A program made the position numbers and the translations under genes. 19,581 nt of DNA, taken from the NCBI RefSeq assembly GCF_006345805.1, contig NW_021824198.1, positions 1 to 19,581 on the forward strand, read 5' to 3'. Shown here in pieces: positions 3,314 to 18,911 of this stretch (the first letter of the stretch is position 1; each line of letters begins with the position of its first letter). Under the pieces are notes generated by a model. It was not told where the DNA came from. It made no database searches and saw nothing but the letters and a program-made list of their open reading frames with translations. Source of the stretch: Octopus sinensis (lineage: Eukaryota).

Positions 3314-3525
3314 TACTCTTTACTCTTTACCTCTTTTACTTGTTTCAGTCATTTGACTGCGGCCATGCTGGAGCACCGTCTTTAATCGAGAAACTCGACC
3401 GGGACTTATTCTTTTGTAAGCCCAGTACTTATTCTATCGGTTTCTTTTGCCGACCGCTAATAACAGGGACATAAACACACCAGCATCGGTTGTCAGCAAT
3501 GCTAGGGACAAACACAGACACACAA

Positions 3526-3558
<33 letters not shown>

Positions 3559-3730
3559 CATAATACGACGGGCTTCTTTCAGTTTCCGTCTACCAAATCC
3601 ACTCACAAGGCTTTGGTCGGCCCGAGGCTATAGTAGAAGACATTTGCCCAATGTGCCATGCAGTGGGACTGAACCCGGAACCATGTGGTTGGTAAACTAT
3701 AGCTACTTACCACACAGCCACTCCTGCGCC
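3314..3730 (-). mobile_element. Full-length tRNA-derived SINE, family A
   Basis: On the minus strand: head ggcgcaggagtggctgtgtggt (A box TGGCTGTGTGG), B box GGTTCAGTCCC, internal (TA)/(TG) tract, 3' end gacggtgctccagcatggccgcagtcaaatgactgaaac, then a tandem (aaagagt)-type tail. Confidence 0.95.
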
Positions 3731-5765: not shown

Positions 5766-5824
5766 TCTTTCTCTCTCTGTCTCTTCACTTCTCTCCCTCA
5801 CGCATTTCCTTGTCTCTTCATTAC

Positions 5825-6345
5825 TCTCTTCTTTCAGCACTCAATCTCTCTTCTTTCAGCTCTCAATCTCAATCTCTCTCTAAACACATAGACGCTTTCT
5901 TTCTCTTCTTTCAGCTCTCTTTATGTATGTAGACGCTTTCTTTCTCTTCTTTCAGCTCTCAATCTCTCTTTAAGCACATAGACGCTTTCTTTCTCCTCTT
6001 TCAGCTCTCAATCTCTCTTCTTTCAGCTCTCTTTAAGTATATAGACGCTTTCTTTCTCTTCTTTCAACTCTCAATCTCTCTCTAAACACATAGAAGCTTT
6101 CTTTCTCTTCTTTCAGCTCTCAATCTCTCTTTAAGCACATAGACGCTTTCTTTCTCCTCTTTCAGCTCTCAATCTCTCTTCTTTCTCTTCTTTCTTACTC
6201 TCCTCTTTCAGCTCTCAATCTCTCTTTAAATACATAGACGCTTTCTTTCTCTTCTTTCAGCTCTCAATCTCTCTTCTTCCTCTTCTTTCTTACTCTCTTC
6301 TTTCGGCTCTCAATCTCTCTTTAAGTACATAGACGCTCTCTTTCT
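5825..6345. repeat. Pyrimidine-rich modular minisatellite, basic period 49 bp
   Basis: The TAGACGC anchor occurs at 5889, 5930, 5979, 6042, 6091 (TAGAAGC), 6140, 6235 and 6330; spacings 41, 49, 63, 49, 49, 95, 95. Confidence 0.9.
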
Positions 6346-6411
6346 CTATTTCTTCCCTACCACCTATTGCACTATTAAATTAATATAAATTAATATAATG
6401 AGATAGATAGA

Positions 6412-7125
6412 TAGATAAAATATCAAGAATATCCAGAACCTGGAAAAGTGACGAATTGGCGTTGTTCCTGATAGGATTGCGATGCGCCGACGGAGATAAT
6501 CCGAATAATATAATTATGGCTGCACTGAAGAGCAATGGATACAAAAGGACGTTAGCTCAAATAGAGCAGAAGAAGCAGGAGTTTATACGCTCCTATGCAC
6601 TTATCAGATCGCACATTAACACGCTGGATGCCATCTTTGACAGCGAACAAAGTAAAGATGGCAAGGATGGAGATGCGGGTGCTGATGAAAAAAGTCACCC
6701 TCACCTGGTAGACACCCAGGAAGAAAACTCCAGTGAGAAACCTGCCCGGGAAGTAAACCCAAGTGCAAGTGCTCCTACCAGCACCAAAAGCCATGGAGAA
6801 AAGAACCAAAAAGGAGGAAAAACTAAAACTAAAACTCAGGCAAAAAACCAAAAAAACGAAACAGCCAAGGATAGAAGCAAATCTGACTATCCATATACCA
6901 AAAAGGATGGAACAAACAGCGCACACGGGTGTGTAGGTTCTACTGAGAGGTGCCTGCTGGCATGGAGAGGAAGGTGCAGGCTGCCGTTTTGCACATCTGG
7001 GACCCTGCGGCAGAGACACGAAACAGGTCAGAACCAAACTACCGAAAGGAAAAGGGATGGACCACGCACCACCTGCCCCAAAACGGAGGTACGCAGATGT
7101 GGTGCGTGCCACAACGCCAACATGA
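6412..7125 (+). pseudogene. LINE ORF1 remnant (low-complexity basic region plus frameshifted CCCH-type zinc finger)
   Basis: Open from the (GATA)n tract at ~6412 (KISRISRTWKSDELALFL...). Joining frames gives VCRFY[L]RGACWHGEEGAGCRFAH (6929-6996) and RRYADVVRATTPT* (stop 7123-7125). Confidence 0.65.
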
Positions 7126-7269
7126 CGTTGTTGAAAGGCACTGCTGACAAGAATCTTTTTTGTGCATGGTACAAAGGATTGTACAGCAGCTGACCTGGCT
7201 TCATCAAACCCAAGCTCACAGGTGGGACTACCCACAATATACAAGACCACCACAGCAAACAGACCCAAG

Positions 7270-10255
7270 ATGGACACCGCCGGCAACAACATACACGTCA
7301 TCTCGATGCTCCTACTGAACATCAGAGGACTGCAAACACTCAGTAACAGGACAAAAATCCCGTTCCTGAGAGACTTTGTCGCATGCAATCAAGGCTTATG
7401 CATAGCACTTACGGAAACGCACCTGAAACCGGACATAGCAGATGCGGAATTACACATACCACAGTATGTTGTACTACGGACCGACAGAAAAGAAAGGAGT
7501 CATGGAGGAGTTGCTATGTACATCCGTGAGGACCTCACACCTCAGGTCCTTTTGTCATACTCAAACTCGGTGTGTGACACACTAATTGTACATGTAAGGC
7601 AACTTGGTGTAGTTGTGTGTGCTACATATCGCCCTCCAGATGCCCCAAGCCATATGGGCATTTGAAGACTGCCTTATAAAAATAGAAGAAGTCTAGTCAC
7701 ACTAGAACAACACATAAGTGTACATCTCATGGGAGACTTCAATCTACCCAATGTCAGATGCCCGAGGCCTTTCTCTCCCAGGAATGACACGATGTGAACG
7801 AGGACAGCGAGGTCCCTCCTGAACCTCATCGACACCCTGTACATGGAGCAAGTAATACTCCAACCAACCAGGGCAGGTAACACACTGGATCTCTGCTTCA
7901 CAAATAATATGGATCTCATCCATAATGTGAAAGTGACACCGACACTACTCTCGGATCACAACATGGTAGAGCTGACCATGTACGGGCCAAAGGAAAGCAT
8001 GGACATGCAGCCTACAAGAAACTCTCAGAATCTTTCCAGCTTGAACTTCAATAAGGCAAACTGGAAACAAATTGAGAAAGAGATCCTCAAACAAAACTGG
8101 CCTGAATGTCTCTCCTCGCCAGACATCGACATGAAACTTCAACAATTCATGTCTGTAATGCAAGCCATATGCTACAAATGTGTCCCAGAGAGAAAGGCCA
8201 CTGTACACAAGAACAAAATCCCCAGAGAGAGGAAAATTCTAATGAGACGGCGTCAAAAATCTCAAATCGCCAAACAAAACAAATTGAAAGCAGTGAAAAG
8301 TCCGCGTGAAAATGAAACTGTTGGAAATTGAAAATGTCTGCAACTCTCCCATGAAAAGGAAAGAGCAGACAAAGAAGCCTGGCTATAGACAACATAAAAT
8401 CTAACCCCAGAGCTTTCTACAGTAATGCCAAGAAACAGCTACGGTGCACTGTAGGATAGGGCCACTCCTTGAAAGGGATGGCACACTCACAGGAAATCCA
8501 ATGAGGGTAAGTGAAATACTAAATGAGCAATTCAAGAGTGTTTTCACCCCACCCCTTGGGCATTTCCAAATCAGCAATCCAACTGACTTCTTCACCACTG
8601 CAGATATGGGGTCAGAGGTGGCGATGATTGATTACATCAATATAAAGGAAGACGATGTAATAAAGGCTATAGATGAGATGAAAACAAACTCAGCTGCTGG
8701 CCCCGATTGATTCCCGGCAATCCTTTTAAAAGTATGTAAGAGAGTCCTAGCAAGACCACGGCAGTTCCTCTTTCAGAGCTTCCTTGCAGCTGGCAAACTT
8801 CCAAGAAAACTGAAGGAAGGTAAAATATGCCCTATTCATAAAGGAGGTAGCAGAGCGGAGGCCAAGAACTACGGACCTATCTCTCTGACCTCACACATCA
8901 GCAAGGTCATGGAACGAATAGTCAGAAGGAAACTAATCACCTTCCTTGAAGAAAATTACTTGCTGCCTGACACCCAACATGGTTTCCGACCAGGAAGAAG
9001 CTGCTTAACTCAGCTCCTACAACACGATGACTGGGTGCTGAAACGACTGCTCAACCACTCAATTGTGGAAGTCATATATCTCGACTTTGCAAAGGCCTTT
9101 GATAAAGTCGATCATGGAATGATATGTCACAAACTGCGTGATCTTGGCATAGTTGGAAATTTGGGAGAATGGCTTCATGACTTTCTGAAGGATAGAAGTC
9201 AGGTGGTAATAGCCAATGGGGCCACTTCCATTAACACGCAAATAGTGAGCGGTGTTCCGCAGGGCACTGTTTTGGGACCACTACTGTTCATAATGGCCCT
9301 CTCAGACATGCCCTCAGTCACGCAGAGAGCCACGATCACAAGTTATGCGGATGATACAAAAGTTTCACAGGCAATACAGAACCCTGAAGACACTAAACAC
9401 CTGCAATGTAAGCTGGACAAAATATACAAGTGGGCTGAAAAGAATAGCATGCAGTTCAATGCTGAAAAGTTTCAAGCTTTATGCTATCAGCATGCAAAAC
9501 TGAATGCAATACCCAATGAATACACTGGACCCGGAGGGATTGCAATCCCAGAGGCACAATCAGTGCGTGACCTGGGTATTCACATGAGTGATGACGCAAT
9601 CTTTCATGTACATGTTGCTAAACTAGCAATGAAATGTAGACGGCTGGCCGGATGGATTCTTAGAACCTTTAGAACAAGAGAACAAGAAACCATGATGGTC
9701 CTCTGGAAGACACTTGTCCAAAGCCACTTTGACTATTGCTCTCAGCTATGGTCACCATTCAGTGTCAAGTTGATCACAGAACTTGAGGCGATCCAACGAA
9801 GCTACACGAAGAAGATAGCCTCTGTGCAGCATATAAGCTACTGGGAAAGACTCAAGAGATTAAAACTCTATTCCTTGGAGCGTAGGCGAGAAAGATATGC
9901 CATAATATATATCTGGAAGATCCTGGAAGGACTTGTCCCAAACTTTGGCATCGAGAGTCACACAAATGCCAGAACCGGGCGCCACTGCGTGGTACCAAGG
10001 ACTCCAAATTTGCCATCAAGATGTAGGACAAGATACTGTGATAGCCTGGGCTTCAGAGGCCCACAGCTCTTCAATACCCTCCCGAAGAACCTGAGGGACC
10101 TGCATGGTGTAGATGCGGATGTCTTTAAAGTAGGACTGGATCTCTTCCTGTCAGGTGTCCCGGATGAACCAACTTCACGGCAGGAGGTGCAGATGAGGGC
10201 AGCTGCATTGAACTCTCTCATGCACCAAATGGCAGTTGCTAAAAAGCATTCGTGA
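7270..10255 (+). pseudogene. LINE ORF2 (APE endonuclease + reverse transcriptase), disrupted
   Basis: ATG at 7270. Frameshifts near 7655-7695, 7760-7810 and 8250-8440. In-frame TGA at 8708-8710 (AAGPD*FPA; G expected). Uninterrupted from 8711 to the stop at 10255. Confidence 0.92.
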
Positions 10256-10541: not shown

Positions 10542-11019
10542 ATGTCTGCAAAGATATATACATATCCACACACTCGTGTCATACATATTGGGTGAGCGAG
10601 AAAAAGAATGAGAAATATGTTTATATACATATGTATACACGCGCACATGCATGAAAGGACACGTGCATAGTGTGTACATTGGTCTATATGTTGCAGTCTC
10701 TGTCAATTTTATGGTACATCGCACACGCGTGACTTATGATGCAACGGTATAATTAAACGGAGATGTACGCACGTGTGTGCGCGCGTGTGTGTGTGTGTGT
10801 GTGAGTGTGTGCACGTGTGTGTGTGTGGTGTTTGTGTTATCATTTCTGTTTCATAGCTTACAATTGTTTCTACATTTCTAGGGTGATTAATTTTGCGTTG
10901 CTTCAAAACGTGTTTGTTTGTAGTAACTTAGTGATATATGTAATGCAGTTTCTTTATATGGTCAGTTAGGGACGTTGCTTTATCAGAACTTGTTACAAAA
11001 AAAAAAAAAATACAACAAC

Positions 11020-11461
11020 AGGAGTGGCTTTGTGGTAAGTAGCTTGCTTACCAACCACATGGTTCTTGGTTCATTCACACTGCGTGGCACTTTGGGCAAG
11101 TGTCTTCTACTATAGTCTTGGGCCGACCAAAGCTTTGTGAGTGCATTTAGTAGACGGAAACTGTAAGAAGCTCGTCGTATATATGTATATGTATATATAA
11201 TATATATATGTGTGTGTGTGTGTGTGTGTTTGTGTGTGTGTGTATGTTTGTGTGTCTGTGTTTGTCCCCCAACATCGCTTGACAACTGATAGTGGTGTGT
11301 TTACGTCCCCGTTACTTAGCTGTTCGGCAAAATGGGAGCGATAGACTAAGTACTAGGCTTACAAAGAATAAGTCCTGGGGTCAATTTGCTCGACTAAAAA
11401 AAGCGGTGCTCTAGCATGGTCGCAGTCAAATGACTGAAACAAGTAATAGAGTGGAAGAGTA
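11020..11461 (+). mobile_element. Full-length tRNA-derived SINE, family A
   Basis: Head aggagtggctttgtggtaagtagcttgcttaccaaccacatggttc, internal (TA)(TG) tract, 3' end gcggtgctctagcatggtcgcagtcaaatgactgaaacaagtaatagagtggaagagt. Confidence 0.95.
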
Positions 11462-12105: not shown

Positions 12106-12380
12106 TATAGATTAATAATTTAAAAATTTTTGTAATTTTTAATTTTTAACTATAATGTAAATAATTAAAATTTTGAATTTTATATTATATATATTTTGTA
12201 TATTATATTAATTAATTTTATTTCTATGTTTTGGTTTATGTTTTTCACTCTTTGATTTGCCTATATATATAAGCATATTCATTCGCGCTCTATACACGCT
12301 CACACGCTCTGTACACACTGGAATACAAGGCATTACATAAATATTATTTATATTATCATCCTTATAATTTTATATATGTA

Positions 12381-12943
12381 TATATCTAGCATGTTGACTG
12401 TCCACTTTTTCGTGTTCAGTCCTTAATTGGTATATATAAATATTTTAATCTTCGGATTCTTTCTTTAATATGCTAGACCACTGGTTCTAATTGATAAATA
12501 TCAATTTTTACCCTAAATTTAATTTTATATAAATATTTGTTCTCTAACCGATAAATTAACTGCTGCTAACTATTAGCTGCAGGCTAGTTTTCTCGGGTCT
12601 CATCGCGCCAAAATTAGAGACATTTGAAATATATATTTCAAATGTAATAGCCGTACTCCATGCACGCGATATTTCGGTATCGTGTTGGCATTTAGTAAGC
12701 AAATTACATTTTATATGGGACCATGCTGATGATGGCTGCACTTTTCCTTGCGGAAAATAACAGCCGAAACTAAATTTAGTACATGGGTAAATATTTATTT
12801 CGTATATTTTTCACTTGTTTATTGTTTTGGTTTTGTGTGTGAGTTTGATCTGAGAACATAGACTTTTTGTGGAGAATGGCGATTTGACGTCTATATCTAG
12901 CATGTTGACTGTCCACTTTTTCGTGTTCAGTCCTTAATTGGTA

Positions 12944-12949
<6 letters not shown>
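12381..12949 (+). mobile_element. Retrozyme-like non-autonomous retroelement 1 (511-bp unit plus 58-bp terminal direct repeat, central hammerhead)
   Basis: 12381-12438 and 12892-12949 are identical (58/58). Both ends run into (TA)n. No coding ORF. Hammerhead at 12709-12791. Confidence 0.75.
12709..12791 (+). ncRNA. Type I hammerhead ribozyme, GUA cleavage triplet
   Basis: Stem I ccatg(12721-25)/catgg(12782-86), with a further tttat/gtaaa extension beyond a bulge. CUGAUGA 12726-32, extra U 12733. Stem II ggctg/cagcc plus ttttcc-ttgc-ggaaaa. GAAA 12766-69. Stem III actaaatttagt. GUA 12779-81; predicted cut 12781/12782. Confidence 0.9.
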
Positions 12950-12992
<43 letters not shown>

Positions 12993-13384
12993 AGGATGAT
13001 AATATAAATAATATTCCAGTGTGTACAGAGCGTGTGAGCGTGTATAAAGCGCGAATGAATATGCTTATGTGTATATTCCGGCGATCGGATATTATATGCA
13101 GAGATATTGTAATGTGACTAAGTGGTGTCAAATGTCTCGACGAAGGCCATTATCGCTGTTAATTAAGTGAAGTTGTTCCGAATATCAACAAGTGAGTAGG
13201 GACATGGACTTCGGTTTCCTGATTGCGTTTTGAGATTGATCACGCGTAAATAACATTAGTATCTCTCTCTCTCTCTTCCTCTCTCTCACAGTCCCACACA
13301 CACACACGTGCACAAATACACACACGCATAAATACATAGATACACACACCTACATATACTGGGAAAACAAACACTGTGATAAAT

Positions 13385-14242: not shown

Positions 14243-14420
14243 GGCGGCGCGCTCGCTGGTAGAATCGTTAGCACGCCGGAAGAAATGCCTACCATTCTGA
14301 GTTCAAATTCCACCAAGGTTGACTTTGCCTTTTATTCTTTCGGAGTCGATAAAATAAGTACCAGCTGAATACTGGGATCGACGTAATCGACCTACCCCTG
14401 CCTTGAAATGTTTGGCCTTG
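14243..14420 (+). mobile_element. SINE family B copy (internal deletion between the A and B boxes)
   Basis: ggcggcgcgctcgctggtagaatcgttagcacgccgg...gagttcaaattccaccaaggttgactttgcc...gtcgataaaataagtaccag...atcgacgtaatcgacc. Confidence 0.85.
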
Positions 14421-14776
14421 TTCATACCAGTTAACAGGAGTGCTGATTTTGTAGTTTTTTAATATTTTCCAAAGCAAATACTTTCTTATCCATATCGTGG
14501 CGATTTTTGTATTCGTTTGGTGTCAGCACAGGACATCCCAAGATGCGATGGACTATTATTTCATCAAATTTATCGCAGTATCTACATTTAGGGTCAGAAC
14601 TGTTTATAAGAAGGTTAGCCTGGTAGTTTTTGGTAAGCAAGCTTTGAAATATGCCGCCACTATGAAACCTTCAGTCTCTGCTTTCAGCCCTGAGCTTCTC
14701 ATCCACGGATGGGTTGTTGCTTGGTCTACATCAGCATTTCGGCTTTGAAGTAAATACTGTCCATACAGAGGCTTCT

Positions 14777-14780
<4 letters not shown>
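14420..14780 (-). mobile_element. Internal fragment of an R4/Dong-clade (RLE-type) LINE ORF, with zinc knuckle
   Basis: Across frameshifts: KPLYGQY...ADVDQATTHPWMRSSGLKAETEGFIVAA / LTKNYQANL..SDPKCRYCDKFDEIIVHRILGCPVLTPNEYKNRHD / WKILKNYKISTPVNWYE. The CCHC-type knuckle and the flanking blocks are typical of R4-clade ORFs. Confidence 0.85.
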
Positions 14781-14821
<41 letters not shown>

Positions 14822-14880
14822 GTAGTAGTAGTAGTAGTAGTATAGTAGTAGTAGTAGTATAGTAGTAGTAGTAGTATAGT
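14778..14880. repeat. (ATT)n(AGT)n compound trinucleotide repeat
   Basis: Direct reading. Confidence 0.95.
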
Positions 14881-15069
14881 ACCTCCGCCTTAGCGTAGTC
14901 GGAGGTATTGCTTTTCAGTCGTGTTTGTTTATTTCTCCGTGGACAAGATATCTCAAGAACCGCTGGATGGATTCGAGCTAAACTTTCAGGGATGTTTGGC
15001 CTTGTGACTGGCACGAATTGATTACATTTTGGGATCGATCTGATGCCGGACAAGGATTCTGGATTATTT
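14881..15069 (+). mobile_element. 5' part of a Helentron-associated non-autonomous element (HINE/DINE-1-like)
   Basis: Begins with the palindromic subterminal motif acctccg-ccttagcgtagt-cggaggt, then gtgtttgttt...ggatggatt...ttttgggatcgatc, a layout recalled from HINE-type elements. Confidence 0.6.
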
Positions 15070-15334
15070 GTTATATTAATTTACACGAAGTATTACGGTC
15101 TTACGTTGACTTTCAAGTCTTTCTCTGATCATCTCCCTTGAAAGCACGCTCATGGTTTCCACGAAACTTATGGCGGCATTGCTGTTTCCAAAGTTTTATT
15201 TTCGTTTCTCTATTATTAATTTTACTCGCGTCTCTCTCTCAGTAGAAACTGATAGATAAATAAATCAAATTACATAAACAAACGGCAGAAAAACCGTTCA
15301 GAAATTAAATAACACTAATATATTCAGTAACAAT

Positions 15335-15818
15335 GTGAGGTATACTTGCCATCTCAATATGGCTAACCACTAAGGGTGGGTGTTACTGTAGCTTGTAGTC
15401 CCAGGAGAATATCGTCTCCAGCTGGCTTTAGGCACACTTTCTGTGCCCTTATGGCATTTGCAAAGGGAGGTCATCCTTCCCTCGTCAACCTAAGTGATAC
15501 GCACGGACTGCAGTTTCTAGGTTTTGACCTGTCATCAGCGTACGACAATCACCGGTTTTCGATGAAAGGGGTCCCAATGCAAATACTTATATCGTTTTTC
15601 CAGTAACTTTTCGTCACTGATCTCAAAAAACTGTATGCAAGCAATAATAAATCTCTAAACGAGGTATAAACAGTAACTGCACGACAACGTAAGGTATACT
15701 AGCCATCTCAATATGGCTAACCACTAAGGGTGGGTGTTACTGTAGCTTGTAGCCCCAGGAGAACATCGTCTCCAGCAGTTACAGTTTATACCTCGTTCAG
15801 AGATTTATTATTGCTTGC
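15335..15818 (-). mobile_element. Retrozyme-like non-autonomous retroelement 2 (354-bp unit, 92-bp terminal direct repeat, 5' inversion, 13-bp TSD, central hammerhead)
   Basis: Direct repeats 15331-15422 and 15685-15776 (5 mismatches). TSD ATTCAGTAACAAT at 15322-15334 and 15819-15831. 15775-15820 is an inverted copy of 15635-15680 (44/46). Hammerhead at 15494-15552. Confidence 0.8.
15494..15552 (-). ncRNA. Minimal type I hammerhead ribozyme, GUC cleavage triplet
   Basis: Minus strand: gtgat tgt cgtacg CTGATGA c aggt caaa acct a GAAA c tgca g TC cgtgcg t atcac. Stem I cgtacg/cgtgcg plus gtgat/atcac. Stem II aggt/acct closed by a C.A apposition. Stem III AC-ugca-GU. Predicted cut between 15506 and 15505. 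Confidence 0.85.
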
Positions 15819-15960
15819 ATTCAGTAACAATAATAGATTTAATTTATCCTCGACAATTTTTGGTTTTACCAATTTTGAATATATTGCTCCTGTTTAAAAT
15901 CTCTTACCTACTTGACAACTGCATTTCTAGCTCTGCCTTGAAGGAAGCTTTACTTCTTGG

Positions 15961-16116
15961 ACTCACGTTTTTGTGCATAACGATGTTGTTAAGCTTCCGT
16001 TAACAACACCAAATGCAGGTCCTGTCCGTTTTCTATTACGCACGGATAAATTTTATGCTATAGACCATAATGGTTGTAAAGACAACATACCAGTAGATAG
16101 ACTAAAAAAGGCCTTC
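15961..16116 (+). pseudogene. Ty3/Gypsy integrase C-terminal (GPY/F-region) fragment
   Basis: THVFVHNDVVKLPLTTPNAGPVRFLLRTDKFYAIDHNGCKDNIPVDRLKKAF fits the Gypsy pattern THVFVRxD...PLxxPYxGPxxV.....V.iDRLKPA. Confidence 0.8.
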
Positions 16117-16211
16117 ATAGGGAAATTTGTCCCTGTTTCCATTGCAGACGATATACACACAGCATTACAAACACAGCCCGCACACCTACCTTCACATTCC
16201 CTGACTACTAC

Positions 16212-16426
16212 TGGGATCGATCAGGTACCAGACAAGGATTCTGGATTATTTTTCCGGGTCTTATTTTTACTTAATTTTTTAGACTGATCGGTTTCATTTT
16301 TAATATTCTCGTTTGTGAGAGCAGTCGAATTTCTTTCAGATATTCTCATTTTAAATATCATCTCCGACTAATCGTTGAGAGGACGTTGGTGTTGTCTTGG
16401 CGGAGGTTTGCTCTCTGAGTGCTAGT
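16212..16426 (+). mobile_element. 3' part of a Helentron-associated (HINE-like) element
   Basis: Starts with a 36/40 repeat of 15030-15069. Ends ggcggaggt (16399-16407, inverted copy of acctccgcc at 14881), a short hairpin gctc-tct-gagtgc, then tagt. Confidence 0.6.
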
Positions 16427-18210: not shown

Positions 18211-18763
18211 ATTTATTTCGGGAGAGGGGTTAAGTCGATTCCATTGACCTCATTAGTCAGCTGGCACTTATTTTATCGATATCGAACGGATGAAGCGTAA
18301 AGTCGGCCTCGGTGGAATTTGAACAAAGATCGTGAAGACAGACGAAACACCTATTTCTTTACTACCAACAAGGAGCTAAACACAGAGAGGACAAACAAGG
18401 ACAGAGAAAGGGATTAAGCCGATTACATCGACCCCAGTGCTTAACTGGTACTTATTTAATCGACCTCGAAAGGATGAAAGGCAAAGTTGACCTCGGCGGA
18501 ATTTGAACTCAGAACGTAGCGGCAGTCGAAATACCTATTTCTATTTCTTTATTACCCACAAGGGGATAAACACAGAGGGGACAAACAAGGACAGACATAG
18601 GTATTAAGTCGATTACATCGACTCAACTGGTACTTAATTTATCGACCCCGAAAGGATGAAAGGCAAAGTCGACCTCGGCGGAATTTGAACTCACAACGTA
18701 ACGCAGTCGAAATACCGCTAAGCATTTCGCCCGGCGTGCTAACGATTCTGCCAGCTCACTGCC
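18211..18763 (-). mobile_element. SINE family B, head plus three tandem internal units
   Basis: On the minus strand, units start at ggt(a/g)tttcg at 18716, 18535 and 18351 (periods 181 and 184 bp). Only the first has the A-box head tggcagaatcgttagc. Confidence 0.92.
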
Positions 18764-18767
18764 TCGA

Positions 18768-18768
18768 T

Positions 18769-18862
<94 letters not shown>

Positions 18863-18911
18863 TAGTAGTAGTAGTAGCAGCAGCAGCAGCAATAATAATA
18901 ATAATAATAAA
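18768..18911. repeat. (AAT)n(AGT)n(AGC)n(AAT)n compound trinucleotide repeat
   Basis: Direct reading. Confidence 0.95.

Follow-up and report, generated by a model that had tools for sequence, protein, structure and literature searches.

What kind of element occupies positions 15322-15831 of the 19,581-nt stretch of Octopus sinensis DNA analysed here (the window; contig NW_021824198.1 of assembly GCF_006345805.1), and by what route did it arrive there? An initial annotation, made from the letters of the sequence, had taken this locus for a retrozyme-like element, that is, a terminally redundant, non-coding 354-nt unit with a hammerhead ribozyme on its minus strand, mobilised in trans by target-primed reverse transcription (TPRT). 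On balance, we read the locus as a fossil insertion, 1.26 units long, of a short non-coding hammerhead retroelement that was non-autonomous and was mobilised by machinery of the Penelope-like element (PLE) type. Such an element would belong with the metazoan non-LTR (long terminal repeat) retrozymes and the non-autonomous derivatives of PLEs; in the terms of the literature, the copy would be a 'monomer derivative' of a non-LTR retrozyme. The copy in the window is most likely inert, given its single ribozyme, a C.A apposition at positions 10.1/11.1 of the hammerhead and ~5% divergence between its repeats.

Anatomy of the insertion and its hammerhead motif

Read in the sense of the ribozyme, which is the minus strand, the insertion consists of a target-site duplication (TSD), an inverted copy of a segment c (~44-51 nt), the direct-repeat copy a' (93 nt), the trinucleotide CGT, segment c itself (51 nt), segment b (207 nt), the direct-repeat copy a (88 nt) and the second TSD (Table 1). 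The 354-nt unit spans 15423-15776, and its single hammerhead is found in b, 71 nt from the 3' end of that segment and outside the repeated part. Both copies of the TSD, ATTCAGTAACAAT, are identical over all 13 bp, as the initial annotation had stated, and the direct repeats that it described (15330-15422 and 15684-15776) are likewise present at a spacing of 354 nt with 5 mismatches (95% identity), their length being 93 nt rather than 92. What it had missed is a 51-nt inverted repeat, 94% complementary, that brackets the second direct-repeat copy: past this copy, the sequence reverses direction and repeats, in inverted form, the segment preceding it. The right end is therefore an inverted fragment and not a continuation of the unit or a simple terminal redundancy, so that of the proposed terminally redundant unit the repeat and the more-than-unit length stand, while one of the two ends has to be redrawn. 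Mismatches amount to 5/93 in the direct repeat, 3/51 in the inverted one and 0/13 in the TSD; such similar levels of divergence fit a single event followed by neutral decay.

Table 1 Features of the element at 15322-15831 (positions in the window; segment names as in the text)
Feature	Positions	Strand	Description
Left TSD copy	15322-15334		13 bp, ATTCAGTAACAAT; ends in ACAAT, similar to the ACAAC in front of the other repeat copy
Direct-repeat copy a	15335-15422	-	3'-terminal segment of the insertion in ribozyme sense
Unit segment between hammerhead and terminal repeat	15423-15493	-	71 nt
Type I hammerhead motif	15494-15552	-	Core and stems, from sequence motif and folding
Unit segment upstream of hammerhead	15553-15629	-	77 nt, no open reading frame
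Segment c of the unit	15630-15680	-	Left arm of the 51-nt inverted repeat
Direct-repeat copy a'	15684-15776	-	Upstream partial copy, analogous to a pseudo-LTR
Inverted copy of c	15775-15825	+	5' end of the insertion in ribozyme sense
Right TSD copy	15819-15831		13 bp

The element is non-coding, in agreement with the initial annotation. Stops occur in all frames; the longest open reading frame (ORF) on the minus strand encodes 34 aa, and the longest in the whole element, antisense to the ribozyme, encodes 76 aa and has no Pfam match and no homologue in a set of 5.8 billion proteins. When this 76-aa ORF was used as bait against the same protein set for ORFs lying on other copies, no candidates emerged. 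A SINE-type, tRNA-like head was sought with ARAGORN and none was found. The element is flanked by the two copies of a 40-nt direct repeat (15030-15069 and 16212-16251; 90% identity, 1182 nt apart), which was considered as the edge of a larger unit, an idea that we rejected as the homology stops at 40 nt.

The hammerhead on which the initial annotation rested is present with its core and all of its stems. Followed from 15552 down to 15494, the minus strand reads GUGAU-UGU-CGUACG-CUGAUGA-C-AGGU-CAAA-ACCU-A-GAAA-CUGCAG-UC up to the predicted cleavage site and CGUGCG-U-AUCAC beyond it, with the conserved core blocks in the right order (CUGAUGA, 15538-15532; GAAA, 15517-15514; GUC, 15508-15506). 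Helix I is open, as in type I hammerheads, and is comprised of 6 inner base pairs, one of them G.U, and 5 outer base pairs, the strands 15552-15548 and 15544-15539 pairing with 15505-15500 and 15498-15494. Stem II and its loop (15530-15519) provide 4 bp above the C.A apposition, and helix III (15514-15507), formed by an A-U and a C-G pair under a UGCA cap, coincides with the 8-nt palindrome ACUGCAGU. Cleavage is predicted after C17 (15506), between 15506 and 15505. At the base of helix II, position 10.1 is a C (15531) that faces A11.1 (15518), which had led the initial annotation to suspect an impaired copy. The literature lends weight to this suspicion, as the G10.1-C11.1 pair is highly conserved at this position (PMC4209133) and HHR_Amex2 of the axolotl, which has U.U at the base of helix II, cleaves weakly. 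With C.A in place of the conserved pair, the hammerhead of this copy is thus probably impaired.

The motif is unlikely to be a chance occurrence in the window. Its linear form occurs once where 0.07 occurrences are expected, and when the stems are required, 3000 dinucleotide shuffles of the window yield a single match as good, with 0.015 descriptor matches of any quality per shuffled window. At this rate, tens of such motifs would be expected by chance in a genome of gigabase size, so the motif alone leaves the matter unsettled. Predicted folds add to it from another side. As a monomer, the RNA prefers a non-hammerhead structure (-18.7 kcal/mol, versus -10.7 kcal/mol for the hammerhead fold), while in a co-fold of two copies the minimum-energy structure is a double hammerhead at -40.7 kcal/mol, held together by an intermolecular helix III of 8 bp. 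These predictions fit a dimer-dependent ribozyme, and dependence on a dimer has been described for the type I hammerheads of metazoans (PMC4209133, PMC7229834).

Structure in the RNA also extends over the unit as a whole, whose GC content is 44%, compared with 36% for the window. Against dinucleotide shuffles, the ribozyme-sense RNA of the unit gives z-scores of -5.6 (circular) and -5.0 (linear), whereas the opposite strand gives -2.1; 36 window segments of 354 nt, taken as background, have a mean z of -0.97 (sd 1.19, minimum -3.07). The excess of structure is specific to one strand and constitutes independent evidence for a functional RNA form of the same polarity as the hammerhead.

A proposed route of insertion

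Microhomology is found at all three junctions of the insertion. On the left, the TSD ends in ACAAT, which agrees at 4/5 positions with the ACAAC preceding a' in the template; on the right, the TSD begins with ATTCAGT, 7 nt over which the inverted copy of c overlaps the duplication and of which 6/7 agree with the complement of the end of c; and between them the inverted arm and the end of a' have GC in common. Only 1.3e-4 of random 13-mers drawn from the window show both of the TSD-side microhomologies (4/5 and 6/7).

Read from this anatomy, the insertion suggests TPRT with twin priming, and each of the steps that follow is to be taken as a proposal. An endonuclease would have nicked the target with a stagger of 13 bp, after which the plus-strand 3' end (...ACAAT) could have annealed to GUUGU inside a multimeric or circular template RNA and primed a cDNA covering 1.26 units, through a, b and c and then a'. 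The other 3' end (...ACTGAAT) would have paired with AUACAGU, in which c ends, 54 nt away on the same RNA, and this second end would have primed the inverted cDNA, which is what twin priming means here. The two cDNAs would then have been joined through their GC microhomology, and gap repair would have yielded the 13-bp duplication. The template would stem from master copies elsewhere, in which the hammerheads of adjacent units may pair through the palindrome ACUGCAGU into a double hammerhead that would cut after GUC and release 354-nt monomers, which a host ligase could circularise. The copy in the window, with one ribozyme in 1.26 units, could not itself give off a 354-nt circle.

A stronger version of this proposal would hold that the locus belongs to an undescribed cephalopod family of retrozymes, and that its anatomy is the direct trace left in the genome when a circular 354-nt hammerhead RNA was reverse-transcribed in rolling-circle fashion, with twin priming by a Penelope-like reverse transcriptase (RT)/endonuclease. 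We entertain this version tentatively, as a possibility about which we are more doubtful than hopeful; if it were true, the locus would preserve the genomic footprint of a step in the retrozyme life cycle that has so far only been proposed.

Known systems and rival explanations

The published work on hammerheads in PLEs and in non-LTR retrozymes, on which the initial annotation had drawn, agrees with what it stated (PMC7229834, PMC4209133, PMC8557442), and provides three systems with which the element can be compared. Metazoan non-LTR retrozymes, whose units in mussels measure ~350-390 nt (Cervera & de la Pena 2020, PMC7229834), resemble it in their type I hammerhead, whose helices I and II measure 6 and 4 bp and whose helix III has 2 bp under a palindromic tetraloop; in the size of the non-coding unit (published range ~170-400 nt) and its GC content; in the lack of LTR-like ends; and in a TSD longer than 4 bp. 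The structure predicted here for the sense RNA matches the 'highly self-paired' RNAs of retrozymes, and insertions of more than unit length are what a circular template is predicted to give. The octopus locus differs in having no tandem array, in its C.A apposition at 10.1/11.1 and in its 51-nt inverted fragment, which is absent from the published retrozyme scheme. Of the idea of a retrozyme-like element mobilised in trans by TPRT, then, the non-coding unit, the metazoan type I hammerhead, the 13-bp duplication, the more-than-unit length and an insertion through TPRT by an apparatus acting in trans all fit, while the definition of a non-LTR retrozyme, as tandem units with two or more ribozymes, does not describe this locus.

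According to the literature, PLE insertions have lost much of their 5' part, frequently form partial tandems with pseudo-LTRs and an adjacent inverted, 5'-truncated copy, and carry hammerheads on the sense strand (Craig et al. 2021, PMC8557442). The layout of the octopus locus matches a miniature of this published structure: a partial tandem with a pseudo-LTR-like repeat, an inverted fragment that adjoins the upstream repeat, no poly(A) tail, a TSD of intermediate length, and a sense-strand hammerhead near the 3' end whose palindromic helix III is suited to cleavage as a dimer. In contrast to PLEs (Cervera & de la Pena 2014, PMC4209133; PMC8557442), it has no RT or GIY-YIG ORF, its unit is 354 nt long rather than ~3-4 kb, its hammerhead lies outside the repeated segment and does not have the extra nucleotide and G10.1-C11.1 pair typical of PLEs, and its inverted piece comes from an internal segment rather than from the 3' terminus. 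A third parallel is with the monomer derivatives of animal retrozymes, which their authors read as offspring unable to transpose further, in families linked to PLE pLTRs (Li, Clavereau & Pollet 2026, bioRxiv 10.64898/2026.07.22.740005). Like these, the element would be a dispersed copy, about one unit long, that stems from a family of hammerhead repeats; the likeness is one of description, and that study covers vertebrates, a few insects and a coral, with no cephalopod family among those it describes.

For the inversion, the parallel is with L1 elements, in which Ostertag and Kazazian are said to have described twin-priming inversions in 2001. In these too, an insertion made by TPRT carries a segment in reverse orientation at its 5' end, and microhomology is found at the inversion junction as well as at the priming site of the second nick. 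L1 is a different class of retroelement, and the insertion studied here differs from it in having no poly(A) tail and a template that was apparently multimeric or circular.

Several observations weigh against our reading of the locus as a non-autonomous hammerhead retroelement. It falls outside the definition of a retrozyme, tandem units with at least two hammerheads, having 1.26 units and one hammerhead; that hammerhead is not in the repeated segment; and the inverted fragment is segment c, an internal piece, where the textbook PLE would have its 3' end. No further copies of the unit were found in the window, in JGI metagenomes, in IMG/VR or in one 21-kb Argonauta locus: a 26-mer from the direct repeat had 0 matches in JGI metagenomes, a family-level hammerhead pattern had 0 matches in IMG/VR and in JGI metagenomes, and the Argonauta locus contains neither a hammerhead nor any similarity to the element. 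A Pfam scan of the 8 larger ORFs detected no PLE coding sequence in the window, with no GIY-YIG match among them. The normally conserved G10.1-C11.1 pair is replaced. The search with Rfam hammerhead models, which the initial annotation had put forward as a check, left the motif below threshold: no model reached its gathering score in the whole window, and none gave a match at E<=10 in 751 nt. The best match, to Hammerhead_HH9, reaches 14.2 bits where the gathering score is 52 (E 0.3, with 91 nt searched alone), in an alignment that has all core blocks in register. The TSD 13-mer, finally, also resembles the a'-CGT-c junction if a gap of 8 nt is allowed, and the choice of target may have been guided by homology, or the boundaries and history of the insertion may be more complicated than we propose.

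A second hammerhead in the window counts in favour of our reading. It lies on the plus strand at 12721-12786 and was found with a descriptor that tolerates a bulged nucleotide: CCAUG-CUGAUGA-U-GGCUG...CAGCC-GAAA-CUAAAUUUAG-UA-CAUGG. This motif is of the PLE type in all three listed features, namely a bulged U after A9 (between 9 and 10.1), the G10.1-C11.1 pair and a fully palindromic helix III, here the 12-nt palindrome ACUAAAUUUAGU; it has no Rfam match at all. The element around it (12262-13075) includes a 61-nt direct repeat (12378-12438 and 12889-12949, 98% identical, 511 nt apart), and inverted repeats of ~110-125 nt (12262-12388 and 12967-13075) flank the whole unit, the junctions falling within runs of (TA)n. 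Both strands of the 511-nt unit are strongly structured (z -5.3 and -6.7). Beyond the ribozyme core, no sequence common to this element and that at 15322-15831 was found, and the presence within 20 kb of two hammerhead elements that are alike in build yet unrelated argues for a recurrent kind of element in this genome rather than a coincidence.

The most serious competitor would make the locus the 5'-truncated 3' end of an autonomous PLE, of which the last 354 nt were copied before a jump to the 3' end of a second template added 93 nt more and an inverted fragment was picked up. We judge this unlikely, while granting that it has much in its favour: published PLE insertions have just such truncations, partial tandems and adjacent inverted copies, most dispersed hammerheads of the PLE type are single motifs 'probably related to truncated PLEs', and the hammerhead here is near the 3' end in sense orientation. 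Four features point away from it, none of them decisively. Upstream of the ribozyme there are stops in all frames and no coding remnant; the unusual structure of the sense strand spans the whole 354-nt unit and not just the ribozyme; the layout of the hammerhead is the 'canonical' 6-bp/4-bp one of type I that is linked to retrozymes, as opposed to the minimal PLE form with its bulged nucleotide, which the neighbouring hammerhead at 12721-12786 does have; and priming at both ends would have used microhomology inside the template, in keeping with an RNA that has no defined 3' end.

An origin without any RNA intermediate is also conceivable, in which the hammerhead would be a chance or long-dead resemblance and the repeats would be the product of DNA-level rearrangement, through microhomology-mediated duplication and inversion. 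The low Rfam scores, the lack of other copies in the sets searched and the rate of 1 chance motif per 3000 windows of 19.6 kb, which amounts to tens in a gigabase genome, all count in its favour, and microhomology at every junction is a mark that replication-based rearrangements leave as well. Yet the exact 13-bp duplication around the whole structure speaks for insertion at staggered nicks, the motif coincides with strand-specific RNA structure and with a palindrome that makes a double-hammerhead dimer the structure of minimum free energy, and a second hammerhead with PLE-specific features stands in a similar architecture 2.7 kb away; we therefore hold an origin by DNA rearrangement to be improbable. 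Still less credible, to the point that we give it hardly any weight, is a DNA transposon, a miniature inverted-repeat transposable element (MITE) or a miRNA-like hairpin-RNA locus defined by the 51-nt inverted repeat. The arms of that repeat are 94% complementary, and 15631-15826 does match two miRNA precursor models with E ~1e-8, but both matches reach about half of the gathering score (50.7 vs 100 and 44.6 vs 110) and occur on both strands, as they would for any long hairpin. In the Rfam search of 751 nt (E<=10), the miRNA reading of the hairpin was rejected on these grounds. In addition, the unit bounded by the TSD does not terminate in the inverted arms, its ends are not themselves inverted repeats, and a TSD of 13 bp is longer than the norm for DNA transposons.

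Genomic setting and meaning of the element

The window is rich in repeats, among them AT/TG microsatellites, SINE-like repeats and a non-LTR retrotransposon. This retrotransposon (6456-10255, plus strand) includes an ORF (8909-10252) that matches Pfam RVT_1, as the only one of the 8 larger ORFs scanned with an RT match; for this RT, the nearest named proteins are hypothetical proteins of Argonauta hians (63-64%), and the best match overall (75%) is from an ENA metagenome. The ORF at 7843-8328 has a weak, sub-threshold match to Exo_endo_phos_2 (16.7 bits, cut-off 27.4), of the type found in non-LTR endonuclease-RT proteins, and that at 7162-7665, which has no Pfam match, looks by eye like an AP-type endonuclease. 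Close to the hammerhead element, the 104-aa product of the plus-strand ORF 15973-16287 resembles by eye the C-terminal tail of an LTR-retrotransposon integrase/pol protein, with a motif like ...NIPVDRLKKAF..., and has no Pfam match.

The SINE-like family (~184 nt; 78-89% identity) is present as three tandem copies (18222-18716) and, in inverted orientation, near 1636-1867 and 14255-14399. Another dispersed family is represented by two inverted copies of ~440 nt (3321-3726 and 11019-11461, 80% identical) and by shorter fragments at 158-406 and 869-985. A CT-rich minisatellite with overlapping periods of ~47, 95 and 112 nt occupies 5814-6364, and two compound ATT/AGT (TAT-TAG) microsatellites (14769-14881 and 18766-18886) carry the same internal TATAGTAG interruptions and are possibly the tails of one repeat family.

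Hammerheads in PLEs and in short non-coding repeats of animals are already well described. For cephalopod genomes, both PLEs and Rfam Hammerhead_1 matches have been reported, one genome paper giving only raw Rfam counts, and we found no literature that joins 'retrozyme' with octopus, squid, Sepia or Euprymna. A hammerhead retroelement of the present sort is apparently undescribed in cephalopods.

As a single decayed copy, the element has no obvious consequence for its host. In practice it is chiefly useful as a seed from which a repeat family can be annotated, and it serves as a reminder that Rfam thresholds miss ribozymes of this sort. Its clean junctions would offer testable detail on how such elements integrate, namely by priming at internal microhomology without a fixed 3' end of the template, and by twin priming. 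If more copies were present in the source genome, cephalopods would join the animals known to have hammerhead-bearing non-autonomous retroelements.

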